Of a stretch of 64,000 bases of DNA, positions 2 to 57,553 are shown one piece after another. A program made the translations under genes and the position numbers. The stretch is from contig JAPDFW010000019.1 of assembly GCA_028826165.1 (NCBI GenBank), positions 14,017-78,016 on the forward strand, in the 5' to 3' direction. This DNA is from Anaeramoeba ignava BMAN. Lineage: Eukaryota; Protista; Anaeramoebae. The notes beneath the pieces are model-generated. The model ran no database searches and was not told where the DNA came from. It worked only from the letters and a program-made list of their open reading frames with translations. The stretch's first letter is position 1. Each line of letters begins with the position of its first letter.

Positions 2-1024
2 GCTTATAAATTTATTTTAGATAATTTTGAAAAATTTATCAAAACTTCATTTTTTCTTGAACTTGAAGAAAATCATTTAAATTCAATTTTATCAAATGAT
101 TACATTCCAATAAATGAAATTGAAATTTTTCAATCATTAATAAAATGGGGAAAACATAAATCAAATATTAATCAAAAAAATCAAGAACTTGAAAAAGAAG
201 AAAAAGAAAAAATCAAAAATCAAATTTCCAATATTATTAATAAAATAAGATTTATTGATTTCACAAAAAAAGAACTTAAAGATACTTTGAAAGAAGATTT
301 AATTCCAAATCAAATTTCACAAAAATTAATTCAATTCCAAAAACTTCAAAAGAATAAAGAAAAATTAAATCAATTTATTGAAAAAGAAAATCAAAATTCA
401 TTCATTTTCAAATCAAGATTTCATTTCTTAACCGAATCAACAATTATTGAAGAAAAAGAACATTTCAATCTTATAAAAGAATGGATAAATGATAATGAAT
501 TTTTTTCTAAAATGAAATTAGGATTTTCAACAAAAAAAGAAGGATTTGATTGTAGAAAATGGCATTCCAAATGTGATGATAAAGGAAAAACATTAATTAT
601 TATCAAAACCAAAGATAATTACATTTTTGGAGGATTTACTTCAATTGGATATATAAGTGATAAATCACAATGGTCACACAATTATGGAAACAATGGATAC
701 ATTCCAGATCCAAATTCATTTATTTTTTCATTAAGAAATGATAAAAACGATAGAAAACCAGAGAAATTTCCTACTCAACCCTCTAAAACAAATTATGCAA
801 TTTATTATCATTTACCTTATGGTCCAAATTTTGGAGGAGTAAATGTTTATAAAAGTCATGATATTTGTTTTAATTCTACTTTGAAATCAGGTGATTCCAA
901 TTTTGGGAACACTTATAATCTTCCTAATGGTATTACTTATCAAACAAATGAATCTAAAAATTATTTAGCTGGTTCTTCAATATTTGATGTTGATGAACTT
1001 GAAACTTTTTTCATTTCAAATTAA
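2..1024 (+). CDS. BTB-BACK-TLDc family protein, 5'-truncated by window edge (paralog 1)
   Basis: Frame is open from nt 2 (AYKFILDNFEKFIKTSFFLELEE...) into ORF 287..1024. TLDc motifs WHSKCDDKGKTLIIIKT, IFGGFT, FIFSL, GPNFGG, LAGS..FDVDELETF. Near-identical to 2402..3364. Confidence 0.88.
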   Translation, partial: AYKFILDNFEKFIKTSFFLELEENHLNSILSNDYIPINEIEIFQSLIKWGKHKSNINQKNQELEKEEKEKIKNQISNIINKIRFIDFTKKELKDTLKEDLIPNQISQKLIQFQKLQKNKEKLNQFIEKENQNSFIFKSRFHFLTESTIIEEKEHFNLIKEWINDNEFFSKMKLGFSTKKEGFDCRKWHSKCDDKGKTLIIIKTKDNYIFGGFTSIGYISDKSQWSHNYGNNGYIPDPNSFIFSLRNDKNDRKPEKFPTQPSKTNYAIYYHLPYGPNFGGVNVYKSHDICFNSTLKSGDSNFGNTYNLPNGITYQTNESKNYLAGSSIFDVDELETFFISN

Positions 1025-1939: not shown

Positions 1940-3364
1940 ATGAAAACTTATTCAAATTTAGAAAAACTTTCAAATGATTTAAAAAATTTATTTCAAAATC
2001 AAAATCAAAATGAAAAAGAAGAAGAAAGTTATTTTGATTTTGAAATAATTTGTGAACAAAATAAAATTTCATTTAAAACTCATAAATCAATTCTTTCTTC
2101 AAGAAGTTATTATTTTAAATCTCTTTTCAATTCTAAAATGAAAGAATATCAAGAAAATAAATTAATTCTAAAAGATGTTTCAAGTTCAATTCTATTTCCA
2201 ATTTTAAATTATTTTTATTCAGGAAAAATTGAAATTAATTTAGAAAATGCAATAGAAATTTTAATTTTTTCATCAAAATATTTAATTGATGAATTAATTG
2301 AAATTTGTTCAAATTTTATCAAAAACAATTTCCAATTTGAAACTATTGTTGATATTCTTAAATTATCTGAATCAATGGACTTCAATCAATTATTGGATTT
2401 TGCTTATAAATTTATTTTAGAAAATTTTGAAAAATTTATCAAAACTTCATTTTTTCTTGAACTTGAAGAAAATCATTTAAATTCAATTTTATTAAATGAT
2501 TTTATTCCAACAAATGAAATTGAAATTTTTCAATCATTAATAAAATGGGGAAAACATAAATCAAATATTAATCAAGAAAAAGAAGAAAAAGAAAAAATCA
2601 AAAATCAAATTTCCAATATTATTCATAAAATAAGATTTATTGATTTCACAAAAAAAGAACTTGAAAATACTTTGAAAGAAGATTTAATTCCAAATCAAAT
2701 TTCACAAAAATTAATTCAATTCCAAAAATTTCAAGAAGAAAATGAAAAAGAATTAAATCAATTTATTGAAAAAGAAAACTTATCAATTTTCAAATCAAGA
2801 ATTCATTTTAAATCAACAATTATTGAAGAAAAAGAACATTTCAATCTTATAAAAGAATGGATAAATGATAATGAATTTTTTTCCAAAATGAAATTAGGAT
2901 TTTCAACAAAAAAAGAAGGATTTGATTGTAAAAAATGGCATTCCAAATGTGATGATAAAGGAAAAACATTAATTATTATCAAAACCAAAGATAATTTTAT
3001 TTTTGGAGGATTTACTTCAGTTGGATTTAAAAAAGATAAAAGATGGATTTATGATTCAAATTCATTTATTTTTTCATTAAGAAATGATAAAAACGATAGA
3101 AAACCAGAGAAATTTACAATTAAAAAAGGGAAAGAAGATCATGCAATTTATTCACTTTTATCTAATGGCCCAAATTTTGGAGGAGTAAATGTTTATAAAA
3201 GTTCAGATATTTTCTTTAGCTATGATTTAAAACGTGGTTATTCTAAGTTTGGACGTACTTATAACTTGCCTAATGGAATTGAACAAGGCTCAAATCAAGC
3301 CAAATTTTATTTAGCTGGTTCTTCAATATTTGATGTTGATGAACTTGAAACTTTTTTCATTTAA
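1940..3364 (+). CDS. BTB-BACK-TLDc protein (paralog 2), intronless
   Basis: BTB motifs DFEIIC..FKTHKSILSSRSYYFKSLF..MKE and LNYFYSGKI, BACK-like helices (EIEIFQSLIKW), C-terminal TLDc. Confidence 0.92.
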   Translation: MKTYSNLEKLSNDLKNLFQNQNQNEKEEESYFDFEIICEQNKISFKTHKSILSSRSYYFKSLFNSKMKEYQENKLILKDVSSSILFPILNYFYSGKIEINLENAIEILIFSSKYLIDELIEICSNFIKNNFQFETIVDILKLSESMDFNQLLDFAYKFILENFEKFIKTSFFLELEENHLNSILLNDFIPTNEIEIFQSLIKWGKHKSNINQEKEEKEKIKNQISNIIHKIRFIDFTKKELENTLKEDLIPNQISQKLIQFQKFQEENEKELNQFIEKENLSIFKSRIHFKSTIIEEKEHFNLIKEWINDNEFFSKMKLGFSTKKEGFDCKKWHSKCDDKGKTLIIIKTKDNFIFGGFTSVGFKKDKRWIYDSNSFIFSLRNDKNDRKPEKFTIKKGKEDHAIYSLLSNGPNFGGVNVYKSSDIFFSYDLKRGYSKFGRTYNLPNGIEQGSNQAKFYLAGSSIFDVDELETFFI

Positions 3365-29178: not shown

Positions 29179-32100
29179 ATGGGAAATAAAAATCAAAATC
29201 AAAATCAAAATCAAAATCAAAATCAAAATCAAAATCAAAATGAAAAAAAACTTCCACAAAAAAGTCAAAGTGTTGAACCAAATGAAAGAATACATTTTCC
29301 AACTTCGAATCAAAAACTACAATCAAAAAGTAAAAGTGTTCAAACAAAAAAAAAATCAATAATTAATGAAAATGATCATTATAAATGGCATCTTGAAATG
29401 CAAAAAAAATATGAACAAGAACAAGAACAAGAATTAGAAATTCAACAAGAATCGGTTGCTATTTCAATTCAAGAAATGATTCGAATGAAAGTTTCACGTC
29501 GAAATTTCCTTAATTCTTTTTCATATCTTCTTAATTTTCAATCAAAAATTAAAGCTTTAAATCAAAGAAATTCTTTTAAATTTAATTCTCAAAATGTTTT
29601 GGTTATTCAGTCTTATTTTAGAATGAAAAATGAGTTTAAGAATTTTCAAAATGAAAAAAGAATAATGAATACAATTGAAAATAAAATAAAAATGAAAAGA
29701 GAAACGGATGAATTTAAAACAAGTAAAATTTTAATTTTAATTTTAAATTTTAATTCTAATTCTAATTCTCATTTTTTAAAAAAGCTTTAAAGAATATAAA
29801 AGTTATTCAAACTCAAATTAAAATGAAAAATGCAGAAAATCATTTCAAAAAAAGTAAATTTAATCAAAAATTTAAAAATAAAAAGTTTGCTAGTTCAAAT
29901 TTATTAAAAAAACAAACAAAAAAAAAACAAGAACAAAATTCTGCTTTAGTTTTCCAATCTTTTACAAGAAATCATTTTATAAATCAAATTTATAATTTCA
30001 AAAAATTAAAACACAGAACTTCTGTTGCAAAAGAATTACTTGAAACAGAAGAAACTTACGTTAGATTTTTAAAATTATTAGTTGTAGATATTATTCAACC
30101 TTTAGAGAATTTAAAAATACTTTCTCAAACAGAAATTCGAGGTATTTTTAGTTGTGCAAAAGAAATTCTTTTTGCAAATACAATGTTTCTTGAAAAATTT
30201 CGCAAAATTATTTCAAATTGGAATGCGGATTCATTAATTAGTTCATGTTTTGATACAAATGTAAATTTAGGTTATTTTAGGAAATGATTAGATTTATTTT
30301 TGAATCAACTTAAATTGTTTTCTTTTATTAGGTTAATATTTTTAAAATGTATTCATTATTTATCAATAATTTTGAACAATCAAGAGCATTAGTTCTTCAA
30401 TCAATGAAAAAAAATTCAAAATTTTCTGCTTTTTTGAATAATAAACTTGATGATCCAAAATTTGAGAATCAAAATCTTGAATCCATGTTGATTATGCCTG
30501 TTCAAAGATTACCAAGATATGTAAATTTAAATCAATTTTAAATCAATTTTAAATCAAATTTAAATCAATTTTAAATCAATTTTAAATCAATTTTAAATCA
30601 ATTTTAAATCAATTTTATATCAATTTAAATAAATTTTATATCAAATTTAAATCAATTTTAAATCAAATTTAAATCAAAATTAAATCAATTTTAAATCAAA
30701 TTTAAATCAAATTTATATCAAATTTAAATCAATTTATATCAAATTTAAATCAATTTTATATTAATTTTATATTAATTTTAAATCAATTTTAAATCAATTT
30801 TAAATCAAAATTAAATCAAATTTAAATCAATTTTAAATCAAATTTAAATAAAAATTAAATCAAATTTAAATCAAATTTAAATCAATTTTAAATCAATTTT
30901 AAATCAAATTTAAATCAATTTTAAATCAAATTTAAATCAATTTTAAATCAATTTTAAATCAAATTTAAATCAAATTTAAATCAATTTTAAATCAAATTTA
31001 AATCAATTTTAAATCAATTTTAAATCAAATTTATATCAAATTTAAATCAATTTTAAATCAATTTTAAATCAATTTTATATCAAATTTAAATCAATTTTAA
31101 ATCAATTTTAAATCAATTTTAAATCAATTTTATATCAATTTTAAATCAATTTTAAATCAATTTTAAATCAATTTTAAATCAATTTTAAATCAATTTTAAA
31201 TCAAATTTATATCAATTTTAAATCAATTTTAAATCAAATTTAAATCAATTTTATATCAATTTTAAATCAATTTTATATCAAATTTAAATCAAATTTAAAT
31301 CAATTTTAAATCAATTTTAAATCAATTTTATATCAAATTTATATCAAATTTAAATCAAATTTAAATCAAATTTATATCAATTTTAAATCAATTTTAAATC
31401 AAATTTAAATCAATTTTAAATCAAATTTAAATAAAAATTAAATCAAATTTAAATCAAATTTAAATCAATTTTAAATCAAATTTAAATCAAATTTAAATCA
31501 AATTTATATCAATTTTAAATCAAATTTAAATCAAATTTATATCAATTTTAAATCAATTTTATATCAAATTTATATCAATTTTATATCAATTTTAAATCAA
31601 ATTTTAAATCAAATTTAAATCAAATTTAAATCAAATTTAAATCAAATTTAAATCAATTTTATATCAATTTTAAATCAAATTTAAATCAAATTTATATCAA
31701 TTTTAAATCAATTTTAAATCAATTTTATATCAATTTTAAATCAATTTTAAATCAAATTTATATCAAATTTAAATCAAATTTAAATCAAAATTAAATCAAA
31801 TTTATATCAATTTTAAATCAAATTTAAATCAAATTTAAATCAAATTTAAATCAATTTTAAATCAAAATTAAATCAATTTTATATCAAATTTAAATCAAAT
31901 TTAAATCAATTTTAAATCAAATTTAAATCAATTTTAAATCAATTTTAAATCAAATTTAAATCAATTTTAAATCAATTTTAAATCAAATTTATATCAATTT
32001 TATATCAATTTTAAATCAATTTTAAATCAATTTTATATCAAATTTAAATCAATTTTAAATCAAATTTAAATCAATTTTATATCAAATTTAAATCAATTTT

Positions 32101-33227
32101 AAATCAAATTTAAATCAATTTTAAATCAATTTTAAATCAATTTTAAATCAAATTTAAATCAATTTTATATCAATTTTATATCAATTTTAAATCAATTTTA
32201 AATCAATTTTAAATCAAATTTAAATCAAATTTAAATCAATTTTAAATCAAAATTATATCAAATTTAAATCAAATTTAAATCAAATTTAAATCAATTTTAT
32301 ATCAATTTAAATAAATTTTATATCAATTTTAAATCAAATTTAAATCAAATTTTATATCAATTTTAAATCAATTTTAAATCAATTTTATATCAATTTTAAA
32401 TCAAATTTAAATCAATTTTAAATCAATTTTATATCAAATTTAAATCAATTTTAAATCAATTTTATATCAATTTTATATCAAATTTATATCAAATTTAAAC
32501 CAATTTTATATCAAATTTAAATCAAATTTATATCAAAATTAAATAAATTTTAAATCAAATTTATATCAATTTTATATCAATTTTAAATAAAAATTAAATC
32601 AAATTAAAAATTAAATAGATTCTCTTATTGGAACAACTGATTAAATACACACCAATAGAACATCCCGATTATATTTTACTTCAAAATTCTTTAAGATTGG
32701 TCAAAAGTACAACAGATGATGTACACGAAAAGAAAAAAAAACAAGAAAAATCATCAGAATTAAAAGAAATCGATAACACTTTAACAATAAAATCAAAACA
32801 AGATTTCAAATTCCAATTATTAAAACCAGCAAGAATATTTGTTGCAAAATTTCCAGTGATATTTTTACAAAAAGGAGCAAAACAATATGTTCTTTTCATA
32901 TTCAATGATATTCTTTTAGTTGTCAAACCAACAAAAAATCTCAAGAAGAAAAATGTTCAATATAAAGTTTGTGGAATCGTTTATTTATTGGATATTCTCA
33001 ATGTTTCCAAAATGAATGAAGATTATGGAAATAGAACTGATCTTATGTTTTCTTTAAAAGATACTCATTTCGTTTTTCGTTTCGAAGATCAAAATCAATT
33101 ACAAGAATTTATTAAATGTTTAGAAGATACTAAAAAAATTGAAAGTGAATCTCTTTCTGCAAAAACAAAAGAAGGAGATCGTGAAAAAACTATCTTAAAA
33201 AAAAATGGAATTCATACTTATTTTTGA
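29179..33227 (+). CDS. IQ-motif + DH-PH RhoGEF
   Basis: IQSYFRM-like IQ motifs. DH motifs ELLETEETYVRFLKLL and LIMPVQRLPRY|ILLLEQLIKYTP..HPD. PH-like LFIFNDILLV. Large intron 30521-32618. Confidence 0.87.
30521..32618 (+). repeat. 2.1-kb intron composed of an 11-bp tandem repeat (AAATCAATTTT/AAATCAAATTT)
   Basis: GT..AG bounded. Exons join as QRLPRY-ILLL. Confidence 0.9.
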
Positions 33228-40268: not shown

Positions 40269-40364
40269 TTTAATTTGTAAATAATTTTTTTTTGAAAGAA
40301 TAACAATAAAAAATGAAAAAAAAAATGAAAAAAAAAATCGGAAAAAAATTAAAATTTTTTTAAT

Positions 40365-43300
40365 AGATTTAAATTTAGTTAAATTAGGGAAAATTATTTA
40401 AATATGTTTATTAAATAGATCTATTTATTAATTTATATTAATTATTATTTAATTATTTTTATATAATTTAAATCAAAAATAAATTAATTTAAAATATTTT
40501 TTGTTTTCTTTATTCCATTTTTTAATTAGATTTTAATTTAGATAAATTAGGTAAAATTATTTAAATATATTTATTAAATAGATCTATTTATTAATTTATT
40601 ATATTTATTATTTAATTATTTTTATATAATTTAAATCAAAAATAAATTAATTTAAAAATATTTTTGTTTTCTTTATTCCATTTTTCATCAAGTTTAATTT
40701 AAATAAATTAGGTAAAATTATTTAAATATATTTTATGTTATTTATTAATTATTTTTAATTTATTATTTTTATATAATTTAAATCAAAATTAAATTAATTT
40801 TAAAATATTTTTTATTTATTCCATTTTTTAATTAGATTTAAATTTAAATAAATTAGGTAAAATTATTTAAATATATTTATTAAATAGATCTAATTATTAA
40901 TTTATTATATTTATTATTTAATTATTTTTATATAATTTAAATCAAAAATAAATTAATTTAAAATATTTTTGTTTTCTTTATTCCATTTTTAATTAGATTT
41001 AAATTTAAATAAATTAGGTAAAATTATTTTAAATATATTTATTAAATAGATCTATTTATTAATTTATATTAATTATTATTTAATTATTTTTATATAATTT
41101 AAATCAAAAATTAAATTAATTTAAAAATATTTTTGTTTTCTTTATTCCATTTTTAATTAGATTTAAATTTAGTTAAATTAGGTAAAATTATTTAAATATA
41201 TTTATTAAATAGATCCATTTATTAATTTATATTAATTATTATTTAATTATTTTTATATAATTTAAATCAAAATTAAATTAATTTAAAATATTTTTGTTTT
41301 CTTTTATTCCATTTTTCATCAAGTTTAATTTTAAATAAATTAGGGAAAATTATTTAAATATATTTATTAAATAGATATATTTATAAATTTATATTTATTA
41401 TAATTTAATTATTTTTATATAATTTAAATCAAAAATAAATTAATTTTAAAATATTTTTGTTTTCTTTATTCAATTTTTAATTAGATTTTTAATTTAAATA
41501 AATTAGGGAAAATTATTTAAATATATTTTATAAATAGATCTAATTATTAATTTATTATATTTATTATTTAATTATTTTTATATAATTTAAATCAAAAATA
41601 AATTAATTTAAAATATATTGTTTTATTTATTCCATTTTTCATCAAGTTTAATTTAAATAAATTAGGTAAAATTATTTAAATATATTTTATGAATAGATCT
41701 ATTTATTAATTTATATTTATTATAATTTAATTATTTTTATATAATTTTAATCAAAAATAAATTAATTTTAAAATATTTTTGTTTTCTTTATTCCATTTTT
41801 AATTATATTTAATTTAAATAAATTAGGTAAAATTATTTAAATATATTTTATAAGTAGATCTATTTATTAATTTATATTAATTATTATTTAATTATTTTTA
41901 TATAATTTAAATCAAAAATAAATTAATTTTAAATATTTTTATTTTCTTTATTCCATTTTTAATTAGATTTTAATTTAAAATAAATTAGGTAAAATTATTT
42001 AAATATATTTTATAAGTAGATCTATTTATTAATTTTATATTTATTAATTAATTATTTTTATATAATTTAAATCAAAATTAAATTAATTTTAAATATTTTT
42101 GTTTTATTATCCCCTTTTTATTTATTTTTTTTCATCAAGTTGAATTTAAATAAATTAGGGAAAATTATTTAAATATATTTATTAAATAGATCTATTTATT
42201 AATTTATATTATTTATAATTTAATTATTTTTATATAATTTTAATCAAAAATAAATTAATTTAAAATATTTTTGTTTTCTTTTATTCAATTTTTAATTATA
42301 TTTAATTTAAATAAATTAGGGAAAATTATTTAAATATATTTTATAAGTAGATCTATTTATTAATTTATATTAATTATTATTTAATTATTTTTATATAATT
42401 TTAATCAAAAATAAATTAATTTAAAATATTTTGTTTTATTATCCCCTTTTCTATTTATTTTTTTCATCAAGTTTAATTTAAATAAATTAGGAAAATTATT
42501 TAAATATATTTATTAAATAGATCTATTTATTAATTTATATTATTTATAATTTAATTATTTTTATATAATTTTAATCAAAAATAAATTAATTTTAAAATAT
42601 TTTTTGTTTTCTTTATTCCATTTTTAATTAGATTTAAATTTAGTTAAATTAGGTAAAATTATTTAAATATATTTATTAAATAGATCTATTTATTAATTTA
42701 TATTAATTATTATTTAATTATTTTTATATAATTTTAATCAAAAATAAATTAATTTAAAATATTTTTGTTTTCTTTATTCCATTTTTTCATCAAGTTTAAT
42801 TTAAATAAATTAGGTAAAATTATTTAAATATATTTATTAAATAGATCTATTTATTAATCTATATTAATTATAATTTAATTATTTTTATATAATTTAAATC
42901 AAAAATAAATTAATTTAAAATATTTTTGTTTTTATTTATTCCATTTTTAATCAATTTTAATTTAAATAAATTAGGTAAAATTATTTAAATATATTTTATG
43001 AATAGATCTATTTATTAATCTATATTAATTATAATTTAATTATTTTTATATAATTTAAATCAAAAATAAATTAATTTAAAATATTTTTGTTTTCTTTATT
43101 CCATTTTTTTAATTATATTTAATTTAAATAAATTAGGGAAAATTATTTAAAATATATTTTATAAATAGATCTATTTATTAATCTATATTTATTATAATTT
43201 AAATTATTTTTATATAATTTTAATCAAAAATAAATTAATTTAAAATATTTTTGTTTTCTTTATTCCATTTTTAATTAGATTTAAATTTAAAATAAATTAG

Positions 43301-43840
43301 GTAAAATTATTTAAATATATTTTATAAATAGATCTATTTATTAATTTATATTTATTATAATTTAATTATTTTTATATAATTTAAAAGTCAAAAATAAATT
43401 AATTTAAAAATATTTTGTTTTTATTATCCCCTTTTTATTTATTTTTCATCAAGTTTAATTTAAATAAATTAGGTAAAATTATTTAAATATATTTTATAAA
43501 TAGATCTAATTATTAATTTATTATATTTATTATTTAATTATTTTTATATAATTTAAATCAAAAATAAATTAATTTCAAAATATTTTTTGTTTTCTTTATT
43601 CCATTTTTTCATCAAGTTTAATTTAAATAAATTAGGTAAAATTATTTAAATATATTTTATAAATAGATCTATTTATTAATTTATATTTATTATTAATTAA
43701 TTATTTTTATATAATTTTAATCAAAAATAAATTAATTAAAAAAATATTTTTATTTTCCATTTTTTATTCCATTTTTTAATCAAGTTTAATTTAAATAAAT
43801 TAGGTAAAATTATTTAAATATATTTTATAAATAGATCTAT
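40365..43840. repeat. ~162-bp AT-rich satellite, about 22 copies, between divergently transcribed genes
   Basis: AAATTAGG(T/G)AAAATTATTTAAATATATTT..AATAGATCTATTT recurs about every 160-175 bp from about 40385 to about 43802. Confidence 0.92.
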
Positions 43841-44190
43841 TGAAAGAATTAATAAAAATTTAAATAAAATAAAAACAAAATGAAAGTAAAAAAAAAACTC
43901 AAAACTGAAAAGTAAAAAAAAAATTTTCTTTTTTAATTTTTTTAAATTTTTTAATTTAAGAATAAGAATAAGAATAAAATAAAATAAAAAGCTATTCTGC
44001 CCCTGACAAATAAACAACAATAAAACAGAAAAACAAAACAAAAAAATTAATAAAAAAAAATTTAATAAAAAAAAAAAATAAAAAAACTTCTTAATTTGTA
44101 TTTATTTTTCTTTTTTTACTTTTTCTTCTTTTTTTCTTTTCTTATTTTTCCTTTGTTCTTTTCAATATAAAAAAAAATTTTTTTCTTTTA

Positions 44191-46331: not shown

Positions 46332-49300
46332 ATGAATTCAAATATTTTTCAAAAAATTGGGAATAAAGTCAGGAATCCACAACCATTAATTTCCGTAAGT
46401 GAAATCTGAAAAGAAATTAATTTTGTTATAAATAATTTGTGAATAAATTATAAATTAAATTATAAATTAAATAATAAATAAAATTATAAATAAAATTATA
46501 AATTAAATTATAAATTAAATTATAAATTAAATTATAAATAAAATTATAAATTAAATTATAAATAAAATTATAAATAAAATTATAAATAAAATTATAAATA
46601 AAATTATAAATAAAATTATAAATAAAATTATAAATAAAATTATAAATAAAATTATAAATAAAATTATAAATAAAAATATAAATAAAATTATAAATAAAAT
46701 TATAAATAAAATTATAAATAAAATTATAAATTAAATTATAAATTAAAATATAAATTAAAATTAAAATAAAATTATAAATTAAATTATAAATAAAAATATA
46801 AATAAAAGATAAATAAAAATATAAATAAAATTATAAATAAAAATTATAAATTAAATTATAAATAAAATTATAAATAAAATTATAAATAAAATTATAAATA
46901 AAATTATAAATTAAAAATAAATAAAATAAATTAAATTATAAATAAAATTATAAATAAAATTATAAATAAAAATTATAAATAAAATTATAAATAATATTAT
47001 AAATAAAATTATAAATAAAATTATAAATAAAATTATAAATAAAAATTATAAATTAAAATTATAAATAAAATTAAATAAAATAAATAAAAATTATAAATAA
47101 AATATAAATAAAATTATAAATAAAAATTATAAATAAAATTATAAATAAAAATATAAATTAAAATTATAAATAAAATATAAATTAAAATTATAAATTAAAT
47201 TATAAATAATTAAATTATAAATAAATTAAAATTATAAATAAAATTATAAATAAATTATAAATAAATTATGTAAATTATAAATAAAATTATAAATAAAAAT
47301 TATAAATTAATAAAATTATAAATTAAATTATAAATTAAAATTATAAATAAAAATTATAAATAAAATTATAAATAAAAATTATAAATAAAATTATAAATAA
47401 AATTATAAATAAAATTATAAATTAAATTATAAATTTAAAATTATAAATTAAATTATAAATTAAATTATAAAATAAAATTATAAATTAAATAAAATTTAAT
47501 TATAAATAAAATTATAAATAAAATTATAAATAAAATTATAAATAAAATTATAAAATAAAATTATAAATAAAAATATAAAATAAAAATAAAAAAAAATTAT
47601 AAATAAAATTATAAATAAATTATAAATTAATTATAAAAAACAAAAATAAAATTATAAATAAAATTATAAATTAAATTATAAATTAAATTATAAATAAAAT
47701 TATAAATAAAATTATAAATTAAATTATAAAATAAAATATAAATAAAATTATAAATTAAATTATAAATTAAAATATAAATAAAATTATAAATAAAATTATA
47801 AATAAAATTATAAATTAAATTATAAATTAAATTATAAATTAAATTATAAATAAAATTATAAATAAAATATAAATTTCTAAATAAATAAAATTATAAATTA
47901 AAATATAAATAAAAAAAGGAAATAATTCAACAAGATTCAGAAAAACAAAAAGAATTATTAACAGATCTACGAGAGCAACTGACTGATCTTCTAAGCAACA
48001 AGAAAGATCTATTAAATTTACAAGAACAATTTGATAAATACAAAATGGAGTGTCAAGAACAAATGAAAGGATTAGAAGCACAAAACAAAGAATACAAAGA
48101 AGAAATAAACAAGCTTCTTGAAGAAAAACGAGAAGCCAAAGAAGATCTTGAAACGATGAAAGGACAATTTGACAGTTTTCTAATAGAAATAAATAAATAT
48201 CAAGAAGTAATCAAGCGACTAGAAAATCAATTTCAAAATGCAAAACAAGAAAAAGACGAGTTAGAAGAGGCGAATAAGAACTTAAGGTCCGAATTAAATC
48301 GGGGACGTTACGAGCAACAGAAGGCGGATAACTATAGAACAGAACTTGAAAGTCACATTGGCGAATTGCAAAGCAACAACGCAGCTCTTCAGCAGGAAAT
48401 CATGAGTTCGAAGAGGCAAAAAGACGATGCAGACAAGCATGGATCCCTCGTTCATGCTCAGCTCGCAAGAATCCTTGCAAAGCCTCAACAGCCAGTACTG
48501 TCAAATTCCGATAATGTTTGGGATGTTGTTGATAATGATATAAATGATCTTCATCATCTTGTTTTTCAATTGAGAAATCAAGTCAAAGACCTCGATTCAG
48601 ATGCTCAGATTTATAAACAAAATACTCAGAAACTCGAACAGGATAATGCTGGTCTTAGAGCTAAAATTATTAATCATAATCGTAATATTTCTACTTATGA
48701 TTATGCTGTAAAGTTGCTTTTAAGAGGTAATTAAAATGAAATTTAAAATGAAATTTAAAATCAAATTTAAAACAAAATTTAAAATCAAATTTATAACAAA
48801 ATTTAAAATGAAATTTAAATCAAATTTTAAAATGAAATTTAAATCAAATTTTAAAATGAAATTTATAACAAAATTTAAAATGAAATTTAAAATTAAATTT
48901 ATAACAAAATTTAAAACGAAATTTAAAATAAAATTTAAAATAAAATTTAAAATGAAATTTATAATGAAATTTATAACAAAATTTATAACAAAATTTAAAA
49001 TGAAATTTATAACAAAATTTATAATGAAATTTAAATCAAAATTTAAAATGAAATTTATAATGAAATTTAAAATCAAAATTTAAAATGAAATTTAAAATGA
49101 AATTTAAAATGAAATTTAAAATGAAATTTAAAATGAAATTTAAAATGAAATTTATAATGAAATTTATAATGAAATTTATAACAAAATTTATAACAAAATT
49201 TAAAACAAAATTTAAAATGAAAATTTAAAATGAAATTTAAAATCAAATTTATAATCAAATTTAAAATAAAATTTAAAATGAAATTTAAAACAAAATTTAT

Positions 49301-51419
49301 AATGAAATTTATAACAAAATTTAAAATGAAATTTAAAACAAAATTTAAAATAAAATTTAAAATGAAATTTATAATGAAATTTATAATAAAATTTAAAATG
49401 AAATTTAAAATAAAATTTATAATGAAATTTAAAACAAAATTTAAAACAAAATTTAAAATGAAATTTATAACAAAATTTAAATCAAAATTTAAAATGAAAT
49501 TTATAATGAAATTTAAATCAAAATTTAAAATAATTTATAATGAAATTTAAAATGAAATTTAAAATGGGAAATTTAAAATAAAATTTAAAATGAAATTTAA
49601 AATTTATAATGAAATTTAAAATGAAATTTAAAATGAAATTTAAAAATGAAATTTAAAATGAAATTTAAAAAAAAAAATTTAAAATGAAAAAAAAATTTAA
49701 AATAAAATTTAAAACAAAATTTAAAAAATGAAAAATTTATAATGAAAAATTTTTGAAATAAAAAAATTTATAAAATAAAAATTTATAAATAAAATTTAAA
49801 ATCAAAATTTATAATAAAATTTAAAATGAAATTTAAATCAAAATTTAAAATAAAATTTAAAATAAAATTTTAAAATAAAATTTAAAATGAAATTTTAAAA
49901 CAAAATTTATAATGAAATTTTTATATAAAATGAAATTTAAAAACAAAATTTAAAAATGAAATTTTAAAAATGAAATTTATAAACAAAATTTAAAATGAAA
50001 TTTAATGAAAATCAAAATTTAAAATGAAATTTTAAAAATTTATATCAAAATTTAAAATGAAATTTAAAATAAAATTTAAAATCAAATTTTTTAAAATGAA
50101 ATTTAAAATGAAATTTAAAATGAAATTTAAAACAAATTTAAAATAAAATTTAAAATAAAAATTTAAAATAAAAATTTATAAAAATAAATCAAAATTTTTT
50201 AAATTTCAAAATTTATATCAAAATTTATATATCAAAATTTATATCAAAATTTATATCAAATTTATATCAAAATTTATATCAAAATTTATATCAAAATTTA
50301 TATCAAAATTTATATCAAAATTTATATCAAAATTTAAAAACAAAAGGTCTCATACCACTTCAACACAAGATCAAAATTTTATCAGCACAAAAACAATATT
50401 TTTTAACACTCGAAAATCAACTCAATAAATACAAAGCAGAAATGGAGAAGCTCCACTACAAGCTAACAGGAAGATACCCAGTTCAAAGAAGACAACCTGT
50501 TTCATTAGCCTCAATAGGATTAGTGGCATTATTTGGGGTAGCTATGGCGAAGACGATGAACGAACGTAACCGGAAATTCGGCAAGCCCTACAAAATCGAG
50601 GGTTCCACAGAAACCATCGTACTCAGCCCAATGACTCAACTCAATCCGAACGCATCTATCTATCGAGTCATCAATGAAGACATCCATAACCCAACAGAAC
50701 AATGGGATGTGGAAAAATTTATCCGATTGGCACTTGAATTCAAACCGAATTTTTTTTCCCTCGAAGATGAAGACCCTTATTCATATCAAAGACTCGGCGG
50801 CGCACAAGGCTTTGCAAACATGAGATCCCCTGATGAGATGTCGCAGCAAGACGAGGTCGCCAATGTTGTGAATAGCGCAATAACAAGACTACTTTCGCGG
50901 ATACATAACGAGGAAAAAGAAAAAAATCTATTGCAAAAATCGTCAGAGGATCTTTCCAACCAATTACGACAACTGGCACAGAACAAGGAGATCAAAGATC
51001 AAGAGATTCAATCCCTTCATCGCTCCCTCTCACAAGCGCAAGGCATGATTGATAGCTTGGGTCTTGAGAACAAGCATTTGCAAGAGCAGATCGAAAATCT
51101 TGTTCCAATCAAGTCACTTGAAATTGAAAAAGAAAAATATGATGATTTGAAATCAAAATTCAATAAAAATCTTTCTTTATTAAACCAGAAGTCTGTTCTT
51201 CTTCAAAATGCAGAGAAACAAATCCAGAATCTTCAAGATACGATCCAAAAACTTAATAATGATTCCGTTCATAATCAACAAAATTTAATTCAATATGAAA
51301 ATGAAATTGATGATTTAACTGAAAAATGCAATCTTTTATCAAAACAAGTTCAAACTTATCAAAAACATATGAGAACTTTAAAAGAAGAAATTGGCAATTC
51401 TGATTTTTTTGATTTTTGA
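46332..51419 (+). CDS. Long coiled-coil protein (3 exons)
   Basis: Exons 46332-46394, 47919-48726 and 50347-51419 join in frame (QPLIS-EIIQQ; LLRG-LIPLQ). Heptad-rich sequence. Introns are repeat-filled. Confidence 0.72.
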
Positions 51420-51604: not shown

Positions 51605-53035
51605 ATGGATAATAATAATAATAACCAAATTCAAAATGCAAATCAAAATGAAAATGAAAATGAAAATGAAAAGAAAAATTTAGAAAAAAAAGTAACAAAA
51701 AATTTAATTAAAAATTATTCAAACCTTTTAAATGGAAATTCATTTAAAGATTTTTCAATTTTTGTTGAGAATAAATCAAATCCTTTTGAAATTAAAGTTC
51801 ATAAATCAATTTTATCTTCAAGATCTCCTTTTTTTAATGAATCATTAAGGCAAGAATCTCTTTTTATTTCTTTAAATCAATTTAATAAAAAAGAAATGGA
51901 ATCAATTTTGAGTTATATTTATTATGGAAATATTTCTTTTGAGAATCAAGAAAATCTTATCCAATTATTGGAAATTTCAATTTATTTTAAATTAAATTTA
52001 TTGAAAGAAATTATTCAAAAAAAAATTTCAAATTCAATTAATTATTCAAATTTTTTCCAATTTTTATTCCAAAATCGAAATTTAAATTCAAATGAAATTG
52101 AAATAAAATGTTTTGAATTAATAAATCAAAATTTTTCCCAAATTCAAAATAATGAGAATTTATTCAATTTAACTAAAGAAGAAATTATCAAATTTATTCA
52201 ATTTAAACAAGAAAAAAAAGAAATTTTTCAATTTGATTTTTTTCAATTTTTAAATAATTGGATTGAAAAAAGAGTTAATTCATTAAAATTAAGGAAATAT
52301 AAGAACAAAATGAATGAAAAGAAAAGATTATTTCATTCTTTTTTTTCATTATTTGATAAAGATTCAATTTCAAAACAAGATTTTGATAAATTAAAACAAT
52401 TTGATTTTTTTCTTCCCAAATTCTTTTTTAATTCATTTTGAAAGAACTATTTTTCAAATTCAAGATCAAGAAAATCAAACAAAAATCAAAGAAAATGAAA
52501 AGAAAATTAAATCAAAAGATCAAAAGATTAAGTCCTTTGAATTGGAAAATCAAAACAAAAACAAGAGGTTACCAAATGAGCAGAAAGGGAAAGAGTTGGA
52601 TAAGAAAGAAAAAGATATTCAAAATCTAAAATCTGAAAATGAAAAGAAAGAAGTTGAAAAGAAATAAGAAAAAAAAGAAAAGAAAATCAAAAAGAGGAAA
52701 TTCAAAATATTAAATCATTATTTCAGAAAGAAAAAAATCAAAGGAAAGAAAAAGATCTGAAATCGGATAATGAAAAGCAAAAGAAAAAGAAAATCAAAGG
52801 AAAGATAAGATTCTCAAACAAAAAAGATATTCTTAAAAATCAGAGAGAAATTGAAAAAAAAATCAAAAATCAAAAATGAAAATAAAAAGAAAAAGAAAAT
52901 GAAAAGAAAGTGAATCTGATAAAAACAAAACCAAATCAAAAACAAAATCTAAACCAAATCAAAATAAAAGAAAATTGAAAAATCTGATAAAAACAAAACG
53001 AAAACGAAAATCAAAAAATCAAAAAAATTCAAATA

Positions 53036-53067
<32 letters not shown>

Positions 53068-56000
53068 ATCTGATAAAAAAACAAAACCAAATCAAAAACC
53101 AAATCAAAAACCAAATCAAAAACCAAATCAAAAACCAAATCAAAATCAAAATCAAAACCAAATCAAAAAAAATTTTTCCTCAATTTTCAGATTCAGAAAT
53201 TATTAAACAAAAAGAATATATTTATAGATTAAAAAAATGGATAAATGATAATGATTTTTTTTCTAAAATGAAAAAAGGATTTTCAGCAAAAAGAGATGGA
53301 TTTAATTCTAAAAATTGGCATAAAGTAGTTGATGGTAAAGGAAAAACATTAGTTATTATCAAAACAAAAGATAATTTTATTTTTGGAGGTTTTACTCAAG
53401 TTGGATGGACAAATGATAAATCAAAATGGAAAGAAAAAGATACAAAATATAATTATGGATTTATTAATGATCCAAATGCATTTATTTTTTCATTAAGAAA
53501 TGATAAAGGAGATAGAAAACCAGAAAAGTTTACAATTAAAAAAGGTCAAGAAAAATATGCAATTTATTATGATTCAAAAGATGGTCCAAGTTTTGGAGGA
53601 TGTAAATATAAATAATTTATATTTAATAAATATTTATTATTAAAATTAAAATTAAATTAATAAATAATCCAAAATATTAATATAATAAATAATATTATTA
53701 TTTCAATTTAAAATTAAATTTAAATTAAATTATTATTAATTATTATTAAAATTAATTATTTATTTTTATTAAAATAGGGAGTAAATAATTTATATTTAAT
53801 AAATATTTATTATTATAATTAAAATTAAATTAATAAATAATCCAAAATATTAATATAATAAATAATATTATTATTTCAATTTAAAATAAAATTAATTTTA
53901 AATTAAATTATTATTAATTATTATTAAAATTAATTATTTATCTTTATTAAAATAGTTAGTAAATAATTTATGATTAATAAATATTTATTATTATAATTAA
54001 AATTAAATTAATAAATAATCCAAAATATTAATATAATAAATAATATTATTATTTTAAATTTAAAATAAAATTAATTTAAAATTAAATTATTATTAATTAT
54101 TATTAAAATTAATTATTTATCTTTATTAAAATAGATGGTAAATAATTTATATTTAATAAATATTTATTATTATAATTAAAATTAAATTAATAAATAATCC
54201 AAAAATATTAATATAATAAATAATATTATTATTTCAATTTAAAATAAAATTAATTTTAAATTAAATTATTATTAATTATTATTAAAATTAATTATTTATA
54301 TTTATTAAAATAGCTGGTAAATAATTTATATTTAATAAATATTTATTATTATAATTAAAATTAAATTAATAAATAATCCAAAATATTAATATAATAAATA
54401 ATATTATTATTATTTCAATTTAAAATAAAATTAATTTTAAATTAAATTATTATTAATTATTATTAAAATTAATTATTTATCTTTATTAAAATAGTTAGTA
54501 AATAATTTATGATTTAATAAATATTTATTATTATAATTAAAATTAAATTAATAAATAATTCAAAATATCAATATAATAAATAATATTATTATTTCAATTT
54601 AAAATAAAATTAATTTTAAATTAAATTATTATTAATTATTATTAAAATTAATTATTTATCTTTATTAAAATAGTTTGTAAATAATTTATATTTAATAAAT
54701 ATTTATTATTATAATTAAAATTAAATTAATAAATAATTCAAAATATTAATATAATAAATAATATTATTATTTCAATTTAAAATAAAATTAATTTTAAATT
54801 AAATTATTATTAATTATTATTAAAATTAATTATTTATCTTTATTAAAATAGCTTGTAAATAATTTATATTTAATAAATATTTATTATTATAATTAAAATT
54901 AAATTAATAAATAATCCAAAATATTAATATAATAAATAATATTATTATTTCAATTTAAAATAAAATTAATTTTAAATTAAATTATTATTAATTATTATTA
55001 AAATTAATTATTTATATTTATTAAAATAGTTTGTAAATAATTTATATTTAATAAATATTTATTATTATAATTAAAATTAAATTAATAAATAATCCAAAAT
55101 ATTAATATAATAAATAATATTATTATTTCAATTTAAAATAAAATTAATTTTAAATTAAATTATTATTAATTATTATTAAAATTAATTATTTATCTTTATT
55201 AAAATAGTTCGTAAATAATTTATATTTAATAAATATTTATTATTATAATTAAAATTAAATTAATAAATAATTCAAAATATTAATATAATAAATAATATTA
55301 TTATTTCAATTTAAAATAAAATTAATTTTAAATTAAATTATTATTAAAATTAATTATTTATATTTATTAAAATATGCAAATAATTTATATTTAATAAATA
55401 TTTATTATTATTATAATTAAATTAAATTATTATTAATTATTATTAAAATAATTATTTATTTTATAAAATATTTAAAATAATTTTTTTAAAAATTATTTAT
55501 TATAATTAAAATTAAATTAATAAATAATCTAAAATATTAATATAATAAATAATATTATTATTTTAATTTAAAATAAAATTAATTTTAAATTAAATTATTA
55601 TTAATTATTATTAAAATTAATTATTTATCTTTATTAAAATAGAGGTTAAATAATTTATATTTAATAAATATTTATTATTATAATTAAAATTAAATTAATA
55701 AATAATTCAAAATATCAATATAATAAATAATATTATTATTTCAATTTAAAATAAAATTAATTTTAAATTAAATTATTATTAATTATTATTAAAATTAATT
55801 ATTTATATTTATTAAAATAGCTTGGTAAATAATTTATATTTAATAAATATTTATTATTATAATTAAAATTAAATTAATAAATAATCTAAAATATTAATAT
55901 AATAAATAATATTATTATTTCAATTTAAAATAAAATTAATTTTAAATTAAATTATTATTAATTATTATTAAAATTAATTATTTATCTTTATTAAAATAGA

Positions 56001-57553
56001 TAGTAAATAATTTATATTTAATAAATATTTATTATTTATAATTAAAATTAAATTAATAAATAATCCAAAATATCAATATAATAAATAATATTATTATTTT
56101 AATTTAAAATAAAATTAATTTTAAATTAAATTATTATTAATTATTATTAAAATTAATTATTTATCTTTATTAAAATAGGTTGTAAATAATTTATATTTAA
56201 TAAATATTTATTATTATAATTAAAATTAAATTAATAAATAATTCAAAATATTAATATAATAAATGATATTATTATTTTAAATTTAAAATAAAATTAATTT
56301 TAAATTAAATTATTATTAATTATTATTAAAATTAATTATTTATCTTTATTAAAATAGATAGTAAATAATTTATATTTAATAAATATTTATTATTATAATT
56401 AAAATTAAATTAATAAATAATTCAAAATATTAATATAATAAATAATATTATTATTTTAATTTAAAATAAAATTAATTTTAAATTTAAATTATTATTAATT
56501 ATTATTAAAATTAATTATTTATCTTTATTAAAATAGGTTGTAAATAATTTATATTTAATAAATATTTATTATTATAATTAAAATTAAATTAATAAATAAT
56601 TCAAAATATTAATATAATAAATGATATTATTATTTAAATTTAAAATAAAATTAATTTTTAAATTAAATTATTATTAATTATTATTAAAATTAATTATTTA
56701 TCTTTATTAAAATAGATGGTAAATAATTTATATTTAATAAATATTTATTATTATAATTAAAATTAAATTAATAAATAATTCAAAATATTAATATAATAAA
56801 TATTATTATTATTTCAATTTAAAATAAAATAAATTTTAAATTAAATTATTATTAATTATTATTAAAATTAATTATTTATCTTTATTAAAAATAGGTTGTA
56901 AATAATTTATATTTAATAAATATTTATTATTATAATTAAAATTAAATTAATAAATAATTCAAAATATTAATATAATAAATGATATTATTATTTAAATTTA
57001 AAATAAAATTAATTTTAAATTAAATTATTATTAATTATTATTAAAATTAATTATTTATATTTATTAAAATAGCTTGTAAATAATTTAAATTTAAAATAAA
57101 AATTAATTTTAAATTAATAAATAATTCAAAATATTAATATAATAAATGATATTATTATTTAAATTTAAAATAAAATTAATATTAAATTAAATTATTATTA
57201 ATTATTATTAAAATTAATTATTTATATTTATTAAAATAGCTGGTAAATAATTTATATCTAATAAATAATCCAAAATATTAATATAATAAATAATATTATT
57301 ATTTAAATTTAAAATAAAATAAATTTAAAATTAAATTATTATTAATTATTATTAAAATTAATTATTTATCTTTATTAAAATATTTATAGGTGATATTGAG
57401 TTAGATTCTAAATTACAATCTGGTAAATCAAATTTTGGTAAAAGTTATAATCTACCCAATGGAATTACTTATGGAACAGATGAAGCTAAAAGTTATTTAG
57501 CTGGTTCTTTTGATAAATGGGTTGTTGATGAACTTGAGACTTATTTCATTTAA
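51605..57553 (+). CDS. BTB-coiled-coil-TLDc protein (paralog 3) whose TLDc domain is split by an intron/micro-exon array; upstream frameshifts are errors or decay
   Basis: BTB in 51605..52441 (DFSIFV..IKVHKSILSSRSPFF). TLDc in 53040..53601 ending GPSFGG. Final exon 57390-57553 encodes (x)DIELDSKLQSGKSNFGKSYNLPNGITYGTDEAKSYLAGSFDKWVVDELETYFI*, collinear with paralogs 1 and 2. Frameshifts at about 52420 and 52660-53040. Confidence 0.8.
53602..57389 (+). repeat. Tandem array of ~176-nt near-identical GT-AG introns separated by variable 3-nt micro-exons
   Basis: Junctions read TTTATTAAAATAG-NNN-GTAAATAATTTA every ~179 bp. There are 17 clean 3-nt inserts, one of 2 nt, one of 4 nt and two degenerate junctions. 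Confidence 0.9.

Follow-up and report, generated by a model that had tools for sequence, protein, structure and literature searches.

Are the near-identical intron-like units that interrupt a TLDc gene of the protist Anaeramoeba ignava spliced out singly, so that the single codons between them reach the mRNA, or are they removed together as one long intron? The question is raised by a stretch of 64,000 nt from strain BMAN (contig JAPDFW010000019.1, positions 14,017 to 78,016, forward strand), called here the window and numbered from its first letter, in which a tandem array of such units, set apart by 3-nt spacers, lies within a phase-1 interruption of the TLDc-coding sequence at 53602-57389. 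An earlier sequence-only reading of the window had proposed that the spliceosome picks subsets of the spacers and thus diversifies a protein loop. We favour, at roughly even confidence, the broader reading that the units are removed one by one and that single-codon exons are left in the mRNA, as the sequence of the array and of its relatives suggests. The layout itself is real and family-wide and, judging from full-text literature searches, appears to be undescribed.

Structure of the array and its splice signals

The array is placed between two exons that together encode a TLDc domain, and the gene and the array are composed of the following parts.

51605-52441, forward strand: BTB/POZ open frame, the N-terminal part of the gene (PF00651, E 3e-13)
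53040-53601, forward strand: N-terminal two thirds of TLDc (PF07534, E 8e-17; profile positions 2-121 of 170), ending GGA GGA T in phase 1
53602-57389, forward strand: phase-1 intron, 3788 nt if taken whole, with its own ends GTAAATA (5') and TTTATAG (3')
53609-57382, forward strand: tandem array of 21 units, each a 175-nt body GTAAAT...AAAATAG plus spacer
53778-53780, forward strand: spacer 1, GGA
53956, 54135, 54314, 54495, 54674, 54852, 55030, 55208 and 55643 (2 nt), forward strand: starts of the later spacers, first part
55211-55642, forward strand: fused two-unit, intron-like stretch of 432 nt, with a degenerate junction near 55373-55378
55821 (4 nt), 56000, 56179, 56358, 56537, 56716, 56895, 57073 and 57240, forward strand: starts of the later spacers, second part
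57390-57553, forward strand: last exon with the 53 C-terminal TLDc residues; GT completes the split codon and GAT ATT follows; stop at 57551-57553

On re-reading of the window, all coordinates and spacers of the sequence-only reading proved accurate to the base, and both of its products were reproduced: with every spacer kept, the local translation yields an open frame with the same peptide as a 20-codon insert, and with every spacer dropped it gives FGG-C-DIEL, in frame. Its description of about 20 identical introns holds with slight correction, as 21 units were counted, with a period of 178-179 nt and matches of 95% and 94% (Tandem Repeats Finder, scores 3248 and 3166), and one of their junctions is degenerate. 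This junction has lost both its AG (now TAT) and its GT (now GC), and the two adjoining units are therefore fused. The 2-nt spacer AG (55643) is followed by the 4-nt spacer CTTG (55821), which jointly restore the frame. Units 14-19 form a two-unit higher-order repeat in which ATA and GTT spacers alternate together with linked variants of the body, thus pointing to a recent duplication of a two-unit block. Column entropy across the units of the window array peaks at the three spacer positions (1.9, 0.83 and 1.57 bits). The claim that the spacers alone are strongly variable stands as far as they have the top entropy in the window, but four C positions of the unit bodies are polymorphic too.

The unit ends, GTAAAT and AAATAG, are the splice-site words of the species, as they match those of a verified intron elsewhere in the window.

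30521-32618, forward strand: single 2.1-kb intron of a DH/RhoGEF-like gene, with ends GTAAAT / AAATAG, splitting a conserved motif between QRLPRY and ILLLEQL

An 11-nt AAATCAATTTT satellite occupies this intron over its whole length, and in 2011 nt there are 178 C and two G, which are the G's of the splice sites; internal G's are absent. All internal AG and GT have thus been purged from it, which suggests that such sites would be used if they were present. The TLDc arrays, unlike this intron, retain about 20 AG and about 20 GT per gene.

Variation among the units sets the spacers apart from the sequence that surrounds them. The diversity figures (pi) below are for 197 units delimited by anchors at both ends, so that the quality of the junctions did not bias the sample.

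A/T positions (171 columns): pi about 0.04
Four C positions of the body: pi 0.25-0.61
Three spacer positions: pi 0.63, 0.36 and 0.70
G of AG: pi 0.11, present in 186 of 197 units
G of GT: pi 0.12, present in 184 of 197 units

About 94% of the units retain the internal AG and GT (94% for the G of AG, 93% for the G of GT), while the remaining G/C positions are all polymorphic (pi 0.25-0.70). The spacers are 3 nt long at 205 of 218 junctions (94%), as expected of symmetric micro-exons, although 7 of 16 arrays hold one odd-length spacer; zero-nt spacers do not occur among them. The 13 spacers of odd length include GGGA, CTTG and GA, and each of the nine 4-nt spacers resembles a common 3-nt spacer with one letter doubled, which fits slippage or homopolymer error. 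Among 393 pairs of units whose bodies are identical or differ at a single position, 349 have unlike spacers. On the sense strand, G makes up 0.09% of the unit bodies, 24% of the spacers and 16% of the exons, so that by composition the spacers fall outside the intron regime. The second spacer position is A in only about 1% of cases. Spacer positions with consensus A or T have about 10-20 times the diversity of other A/T positions, and AT-biased decay of G and C accounts for the body C sites but not for these. No signal of additional AG or GT avoidance was found around the rare G's of the bodies, of which there are only 27.

Because each copy carries consensus 5' and 3' splice sites and because the organism purges G from another long intron, the units are likely to be handled as short introns. 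The spliceosome would treat them as ordinary short introns, stepwise as in recursive splicing, with a 3-nt footprint at each step. The mRNA would then retain some or all of the spacers as single-codon exons, and the FG-x-D turn of TLDc would become longer. Inclusion would be likely to vary between transcripts, since of an acceptor and a donor separated by only 3 nt no more than one can be occupied at a time; such variation would probably be a by-product, and selection for it is not claimed here.

Distribution and turnover of the arrays in the genome

A query of two units gave at least 684 matches in the 42.8-Mb genome, with 96-100% identity among the matches listed, and the junction word with an NNN centre occurs 240 times genome-wide versus 0 for the reversed control, which excludes chance. 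By position the matches group into about 37 or more loci. The sequence-only reading had pointed to a scan for AG-NNN-GT repeats in other TLDc/BTB genes, and these paralogous loci are what such a scan returned. From them, 20 genomic stretches with 21 arrays of 1-29 units were cut out for close reading. Every array with readable flanks lies between the same two TLDc exons, the orientation is sense in 20/20 arrays with a readable gene strand, and a distinctive first and last unit, slightly different from the others, is common to these arrays. The three loci that have no more than two units are TLDc genes as well, and at all 24 loci examined the copies are found at one site of TLDc paralogs. A generic dispersed satellite was considered and rejected, as every sampled array sits in the same intron of a TLDc paralog.

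Some of the arrayed TLDc genes are clustered. Six arrays lie within 80 kb on contig C35 of the assembly (G000; 350-430 kb) and four within about 100 kb on contig C117 (43-148 kb), and another cluster of arrayed TLDc genes is located on contig C137 (748-806 kb). Some neighbours in the clusters are oppositely oriented.

Divergence of the unit bodies amounts to 5.5 of 175 positions within arrays and to 6.4 of 175 between arrays (~3.7%), whereas the flanking 90 codons of 16 arrayed paralogs are 83% identical (~17% differ) and their third positions 85%. The intron copies are four to five times less diverged than the adjacent near-neutral exon sites, and therefore either exchange between loci (concerted evolution) or recent spread must be assumed. 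The same figures, 3.7% for units between arrays against 17% for exons (15% at third positions), are those of satellite-type concerted evolution. The exons are no more alike near the borders of the intron than farther away from it. Identical neighbouring spacers are more frequent than expected (33 observed, 24 expected, P = 0.017), which fits local duplication, and polymorphic sites within units are near linkage equilibrium (Cramer's V 0.1-0.3). Taken as a whole, the comparison shows that the units are homogenised among loci and that the arrays grow and shrink by local duplication.

The tree of the exons is star-like, and the arrayed genes cluster on it (5 changes by parsimony versus 14 with shuffled labels), which is compatible with a single origin of the array or with repeated gain. 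We hypothesize that a short phase-1 intron in one BTB/TLDc subfamily was amplified in tandem together with three flanking exon bases. This would have resulted in arrays of 2 to 29 complete intron copies spaced by 3 nt.

Splicing of the array and the rival explanations

Some of the tests for coding use of the spacers speak for removal of the units one by one. When 174 pairs of neighbouring spacers are read through, the true phase contains a single stop codon, compared with 4 for phase 0 and 50 for phase 2, and 4.8 true-phase stops are expected when spacers are shuffled across arrays (P = 0.018). The spacers preserve the frame in 9 of 16 arrays, and all nine read open with everything kept.

Several results weigh against this reading and speak for the possibility, which we hold at somewhat below even confidence, that the array is excised in its entirety as a single long intron, perhaps after nested removal of inner pieces, and the two TLDc exons are joined directly. 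The spacers would then be plain intron, and they would vary because the satellite, which is young and homogenised, mutates at the few sites where it has G or C. Avoidance of stops is not significant against a shuffle within arrays (3.3 expected, P = 0.10). The other seven arrays are frameshifted with every spacer kept, about 6% of all spacers breaking the frame, and indels per nt are about twice as frequent at the junctions (0.016) as in the bodies (0.008). This junction rate is above the body rate, not below it, and therefore no coding constraint is visible on spacer length, although nanopore assembly errors could blur the comparison. The C sites of the bodies match the spacers in diversity, and the hypervariable triplet belongs to the repeat family wherever it occurs and is not specific to the gene in the window. 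The intron at 30521-32618 shows that the organism is able to remove a kilobase-sized intron in one piece, and the reading with all spacers skipped is open and in frame in all 16 arrays. It is also the reading annotated by NCBI, whose models P0007 and P0020 of arrayed genes have the whole array spliced out.

The product without spacers is structurally sound. An AlphaFold2 model of P0020, an arrayed paralog standing in for the window gene, built on a family alignment of 46 sequences, folds as TLDc with a predicted local distance difference test score (pLDDT) of 95.4, a predicted template modelling score of 0.91 and pLDDT of 97-98 around the joint, which falls in a tight turn before a strand. By Foldseek, the model matches the TLDc domains of Skywalker/TBC1D24, NCOA7, OXR2 and mEAK7 at template modelling scores of 0.64-0.71. 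Skipping all spacers leaves 1-2 residues between FG and D, and the intronless A. ignava paralogs have 2-8 or more; the turn of outgroup TLDc proteins is also 1-2 residues, and it is this short turn that removal in one piece gives. The objection that the loop would be too short for function was rejected on account of the outgroup turns and the confident model. The FG...D loop is the most length-variable part of the TLDc family alignment, in agreement with the earlier suggestion that the spacers sit in an insertion-tolerant loop, and an insertion there is plausible, but not required. A search with the C-terminal exon for transcript-derived fragments across the joint gave no candidates.

What removal in one piece leaves to be explained is the quality of the internal sites. 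They have the words of real splice sites and are conserved while other G/C sites of the repeat decay, and the G-stripped intron at 30521-32618 suggests that an internal AG or GT would be used. G is about 250 times more frequent in the spacers than in the unit bodies, and the 10-20-fold excess of diversity at A/T-consensus spacer positions is not explained by AT-biased decay. As to the annotation, the genome paper contains no statement that the NCBI models rest on spliced reads (PMC11550330). The splicing interpretation of the sequence-only reading is thus supported in part, by the splice words, the symmetric 3-nt spacers, the conserved AG and GT and the recurrence at a minimum of 37 loci, and is weakened by the seven frameshifted arrays, by spacers unprotected from indels and by the soundness of the product without them.

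Removal of the units one by one includes, as an unlikely special case, the programmed diversity generator that had been proposed for the locus, in which each transcript would contain a different in-order subset of the single-codon exons. One gene would then give many TLDc proteins with a recognition loop varied in length and sequence, and the repertoire of codons would be reshuffled continually as the homogenised arrays, in about 37 genes, exchange unequally with one another.

We give little credence to the idea that the array acts mainly as DNA or chromatin, i.e., as an AT-rich repeat of nucleosome length by which members of the large gene family are silenced or variegated, or as a homology block for exchange of C-terminal exons, with the variable triplet possibly marking a repair or recombination junction. 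The 178-bp unit is near the nucleosome repeat length, the near-identity of arrays across loci requires frequent exchange, the near-equilibrium of polymorphisms within units fits such exchange, and substitutions and indels are both concentrated at the junction. However, the exchange tracts stop at the array, as the lack of a rise in exon identity at the intron borders indicates, and the conservation of AG and GT as well as the uniform sense orientation (20/20) would be left unexplained. Least probable is a mobile intron-generating element (introner) inserted repeatedly, even though the GT...AG ends, the uniform length, the hundreds of near-identical copies and the 3-nt spacers, which resemble target-site duplications, would suit one. 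Every copy examined is at a single position of one gene family, the terminal structure common to all arrays argues for one origin, and no obvious terminal inverted repeat was seen on reading the unit ends, for which no formal search was made. This candidate was rejected, as the sampled arrays are all in the same intron of TLDc paralogs and none is in an unrelated gene (24 loci).

The gene family, related systems and neighbouring repeats

The upstream TLDc exon of the window gene scores 62.1 bits against PF07534, for which the curated cut-off is 24.5, and its closest relatives are NCBI proteins of Anaeramoeba ignava itself (locus tags M0811_) with 65-83% identity. The gene also has a BTB domain and is a putative CUL3 adaptor. 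Between the two domains, in the K/E-rich low-complexity stretch at 52441-53040, its reading frame changes three times or more, whereas many paralogs have a single open frame of 400-650 amino acids; the copy in the window may be a pseudogene, or it may be poorly polished and contain nanopore homopolymer errors. The assembly was made from 2017-era nanopore reads with Pilon polishing, the genome is 80.65% A+T overall and 91.86% in introns, and RNA-seq of A. ignava BMAN exists (PMC11550330). Whole-genome protein searches gave ~600-665 first-look candidates for the BTB/TLDc family, of which at least 148 of the 150 scored passed each time. Most of the several hundred members read through the loop and have no intron there, and across the family the FG...D loop is between 1 and about 20 residues long. 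The family represents a very large lineage-specific expansion of possible ubiquitin-ligase adaptors in a 42.8-Mb genome. The genome paper makes no mention of the tandem intron arrays or of the BTB/TLDc expansion (PMC11550330), and no paper on TLDc together with Anaeramoeba was found in the literature search.

Two intronless paralogs are present in the window.

419-1015, forward strand: intronless TLDc paralog with an 8-residue FG...D loop, loop DNA GTAAAT GTT TAT AAAAG
2813-3358, forward strand: second intronless TLDc paralog with a like loop type

PF07534 is covered from profile position 2 to 167 in an intronless paralog. The loops of the two genes, at 839-859 and 3185-3205, are encoded by GTA AAT GTT TAT AAA AGT. 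This DNA resembles a 5' splice site joined to the 3' end of an intron and could be the exonised remnant of a deleted intron or a proto-intron. The idea that the intronless loops are fossil strings of micro-exons, i.e., retrocopies of spliced mRNA, was unsupported, as A and T are equally common as the last letter of their codons, whereas A makes up only about 1% at the second spacer position.

Recursive (ratchet-point) splicing operates in long introns of Drosophila and vertebrates. The arrays resemble it in that a donor GT comes right behind an internal acceptor AG, which makes stepwise removal of a long intron possible. Known recursive sites are, however, single, with a zero-nt exon or a discarded recursive exon, while AG and GT in the arrays are not juxtaposed but 3 nt apart in 205/218 junctions; each step would leave 3 nt, up to 29 identical copies stand in tandem in dozens of paralogs, and use of the sites is predicted. 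The polyubiquitin gene UBC is likewise a tandem repeat with a splice-competent motif at the unit borders, in which stochastic splicing varies the number of units (PMC10809524). There, the repeated unit is coding (the ubiquitin monomer) and the motif is AGGT, whereas in A. ignava the intron is repeated and a single codon would vary. The micro-exon genes of Schistosoma share symmetric micro-exons down to 3 bp, whose skipping varies the protein of an expanded family (10.1101/2023.06.21.545858; PMC4015677). Their introns are long and mutually unrelated, most of the exons measure 6-81 bp, and secreted proteins are encoded, in contrast to near-identical tandem introns inside a loop of a globular domain.

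Intron gain by tandem genomic duplication is similar in that duplication across splice signals adds in-frame introns, but the known cases are single events, each giving one intron from duplicated exon sequence (PMC4974935). In the A. ignava arrays a whole intron, together with 3 nt, is present in up to 29 successive copies, which are homogenised between loci. Introners also occur as hundreds of near-identical intron copies per genome, but these are transposed into unrelated genes (10.1101/2022.06.06.494994; PMC12130899), while the A. ignava copies are in tandem and confined to one site of one family. With concertedly evolving satellite DNA the arrays have in common a ~178-bp AT-rich unit, higher-order repeats and loci that are more alike than the unique sequence flanking them; they differ from it by their restriction to one intron position, by sense-only orientation and by conserved splice signals.

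If the units are spliced singly, the arrays would surpass in length all known chains of single-codon exons, and the spliceosome would be able to turn a tandem repeat into a protein loop of variable length. This bears on the multiplication of introns, on minimal exon length and on splicing-based diversification of recognition proteins in protists. Were the diversity generator true, it would be a splicing counterpart of immune-receptor diversification in a single-celled eukaryote with bacterial symbionts. Even as one big intron, the array needs an explanation of its about 96% identity across dozens of loci, with exons at 83%, and of the 20 or so consensus splice sites per gene, given that the intron at 30521-32618 lacks internal G.

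Two other repeats were observed in the window. At 40357-43841, another tandem array is formed by about 21 copies of a 163-nt unit with 88% matches; in each unit AATTAG is directly followed by GTAAAAT, so that an acceptor and a donor adjoin without a spacer. At 48714-50358, a low-complexity repeat has long open frames on both strands (MKFK... and NFIL...) and is probably a non-coding satellite.

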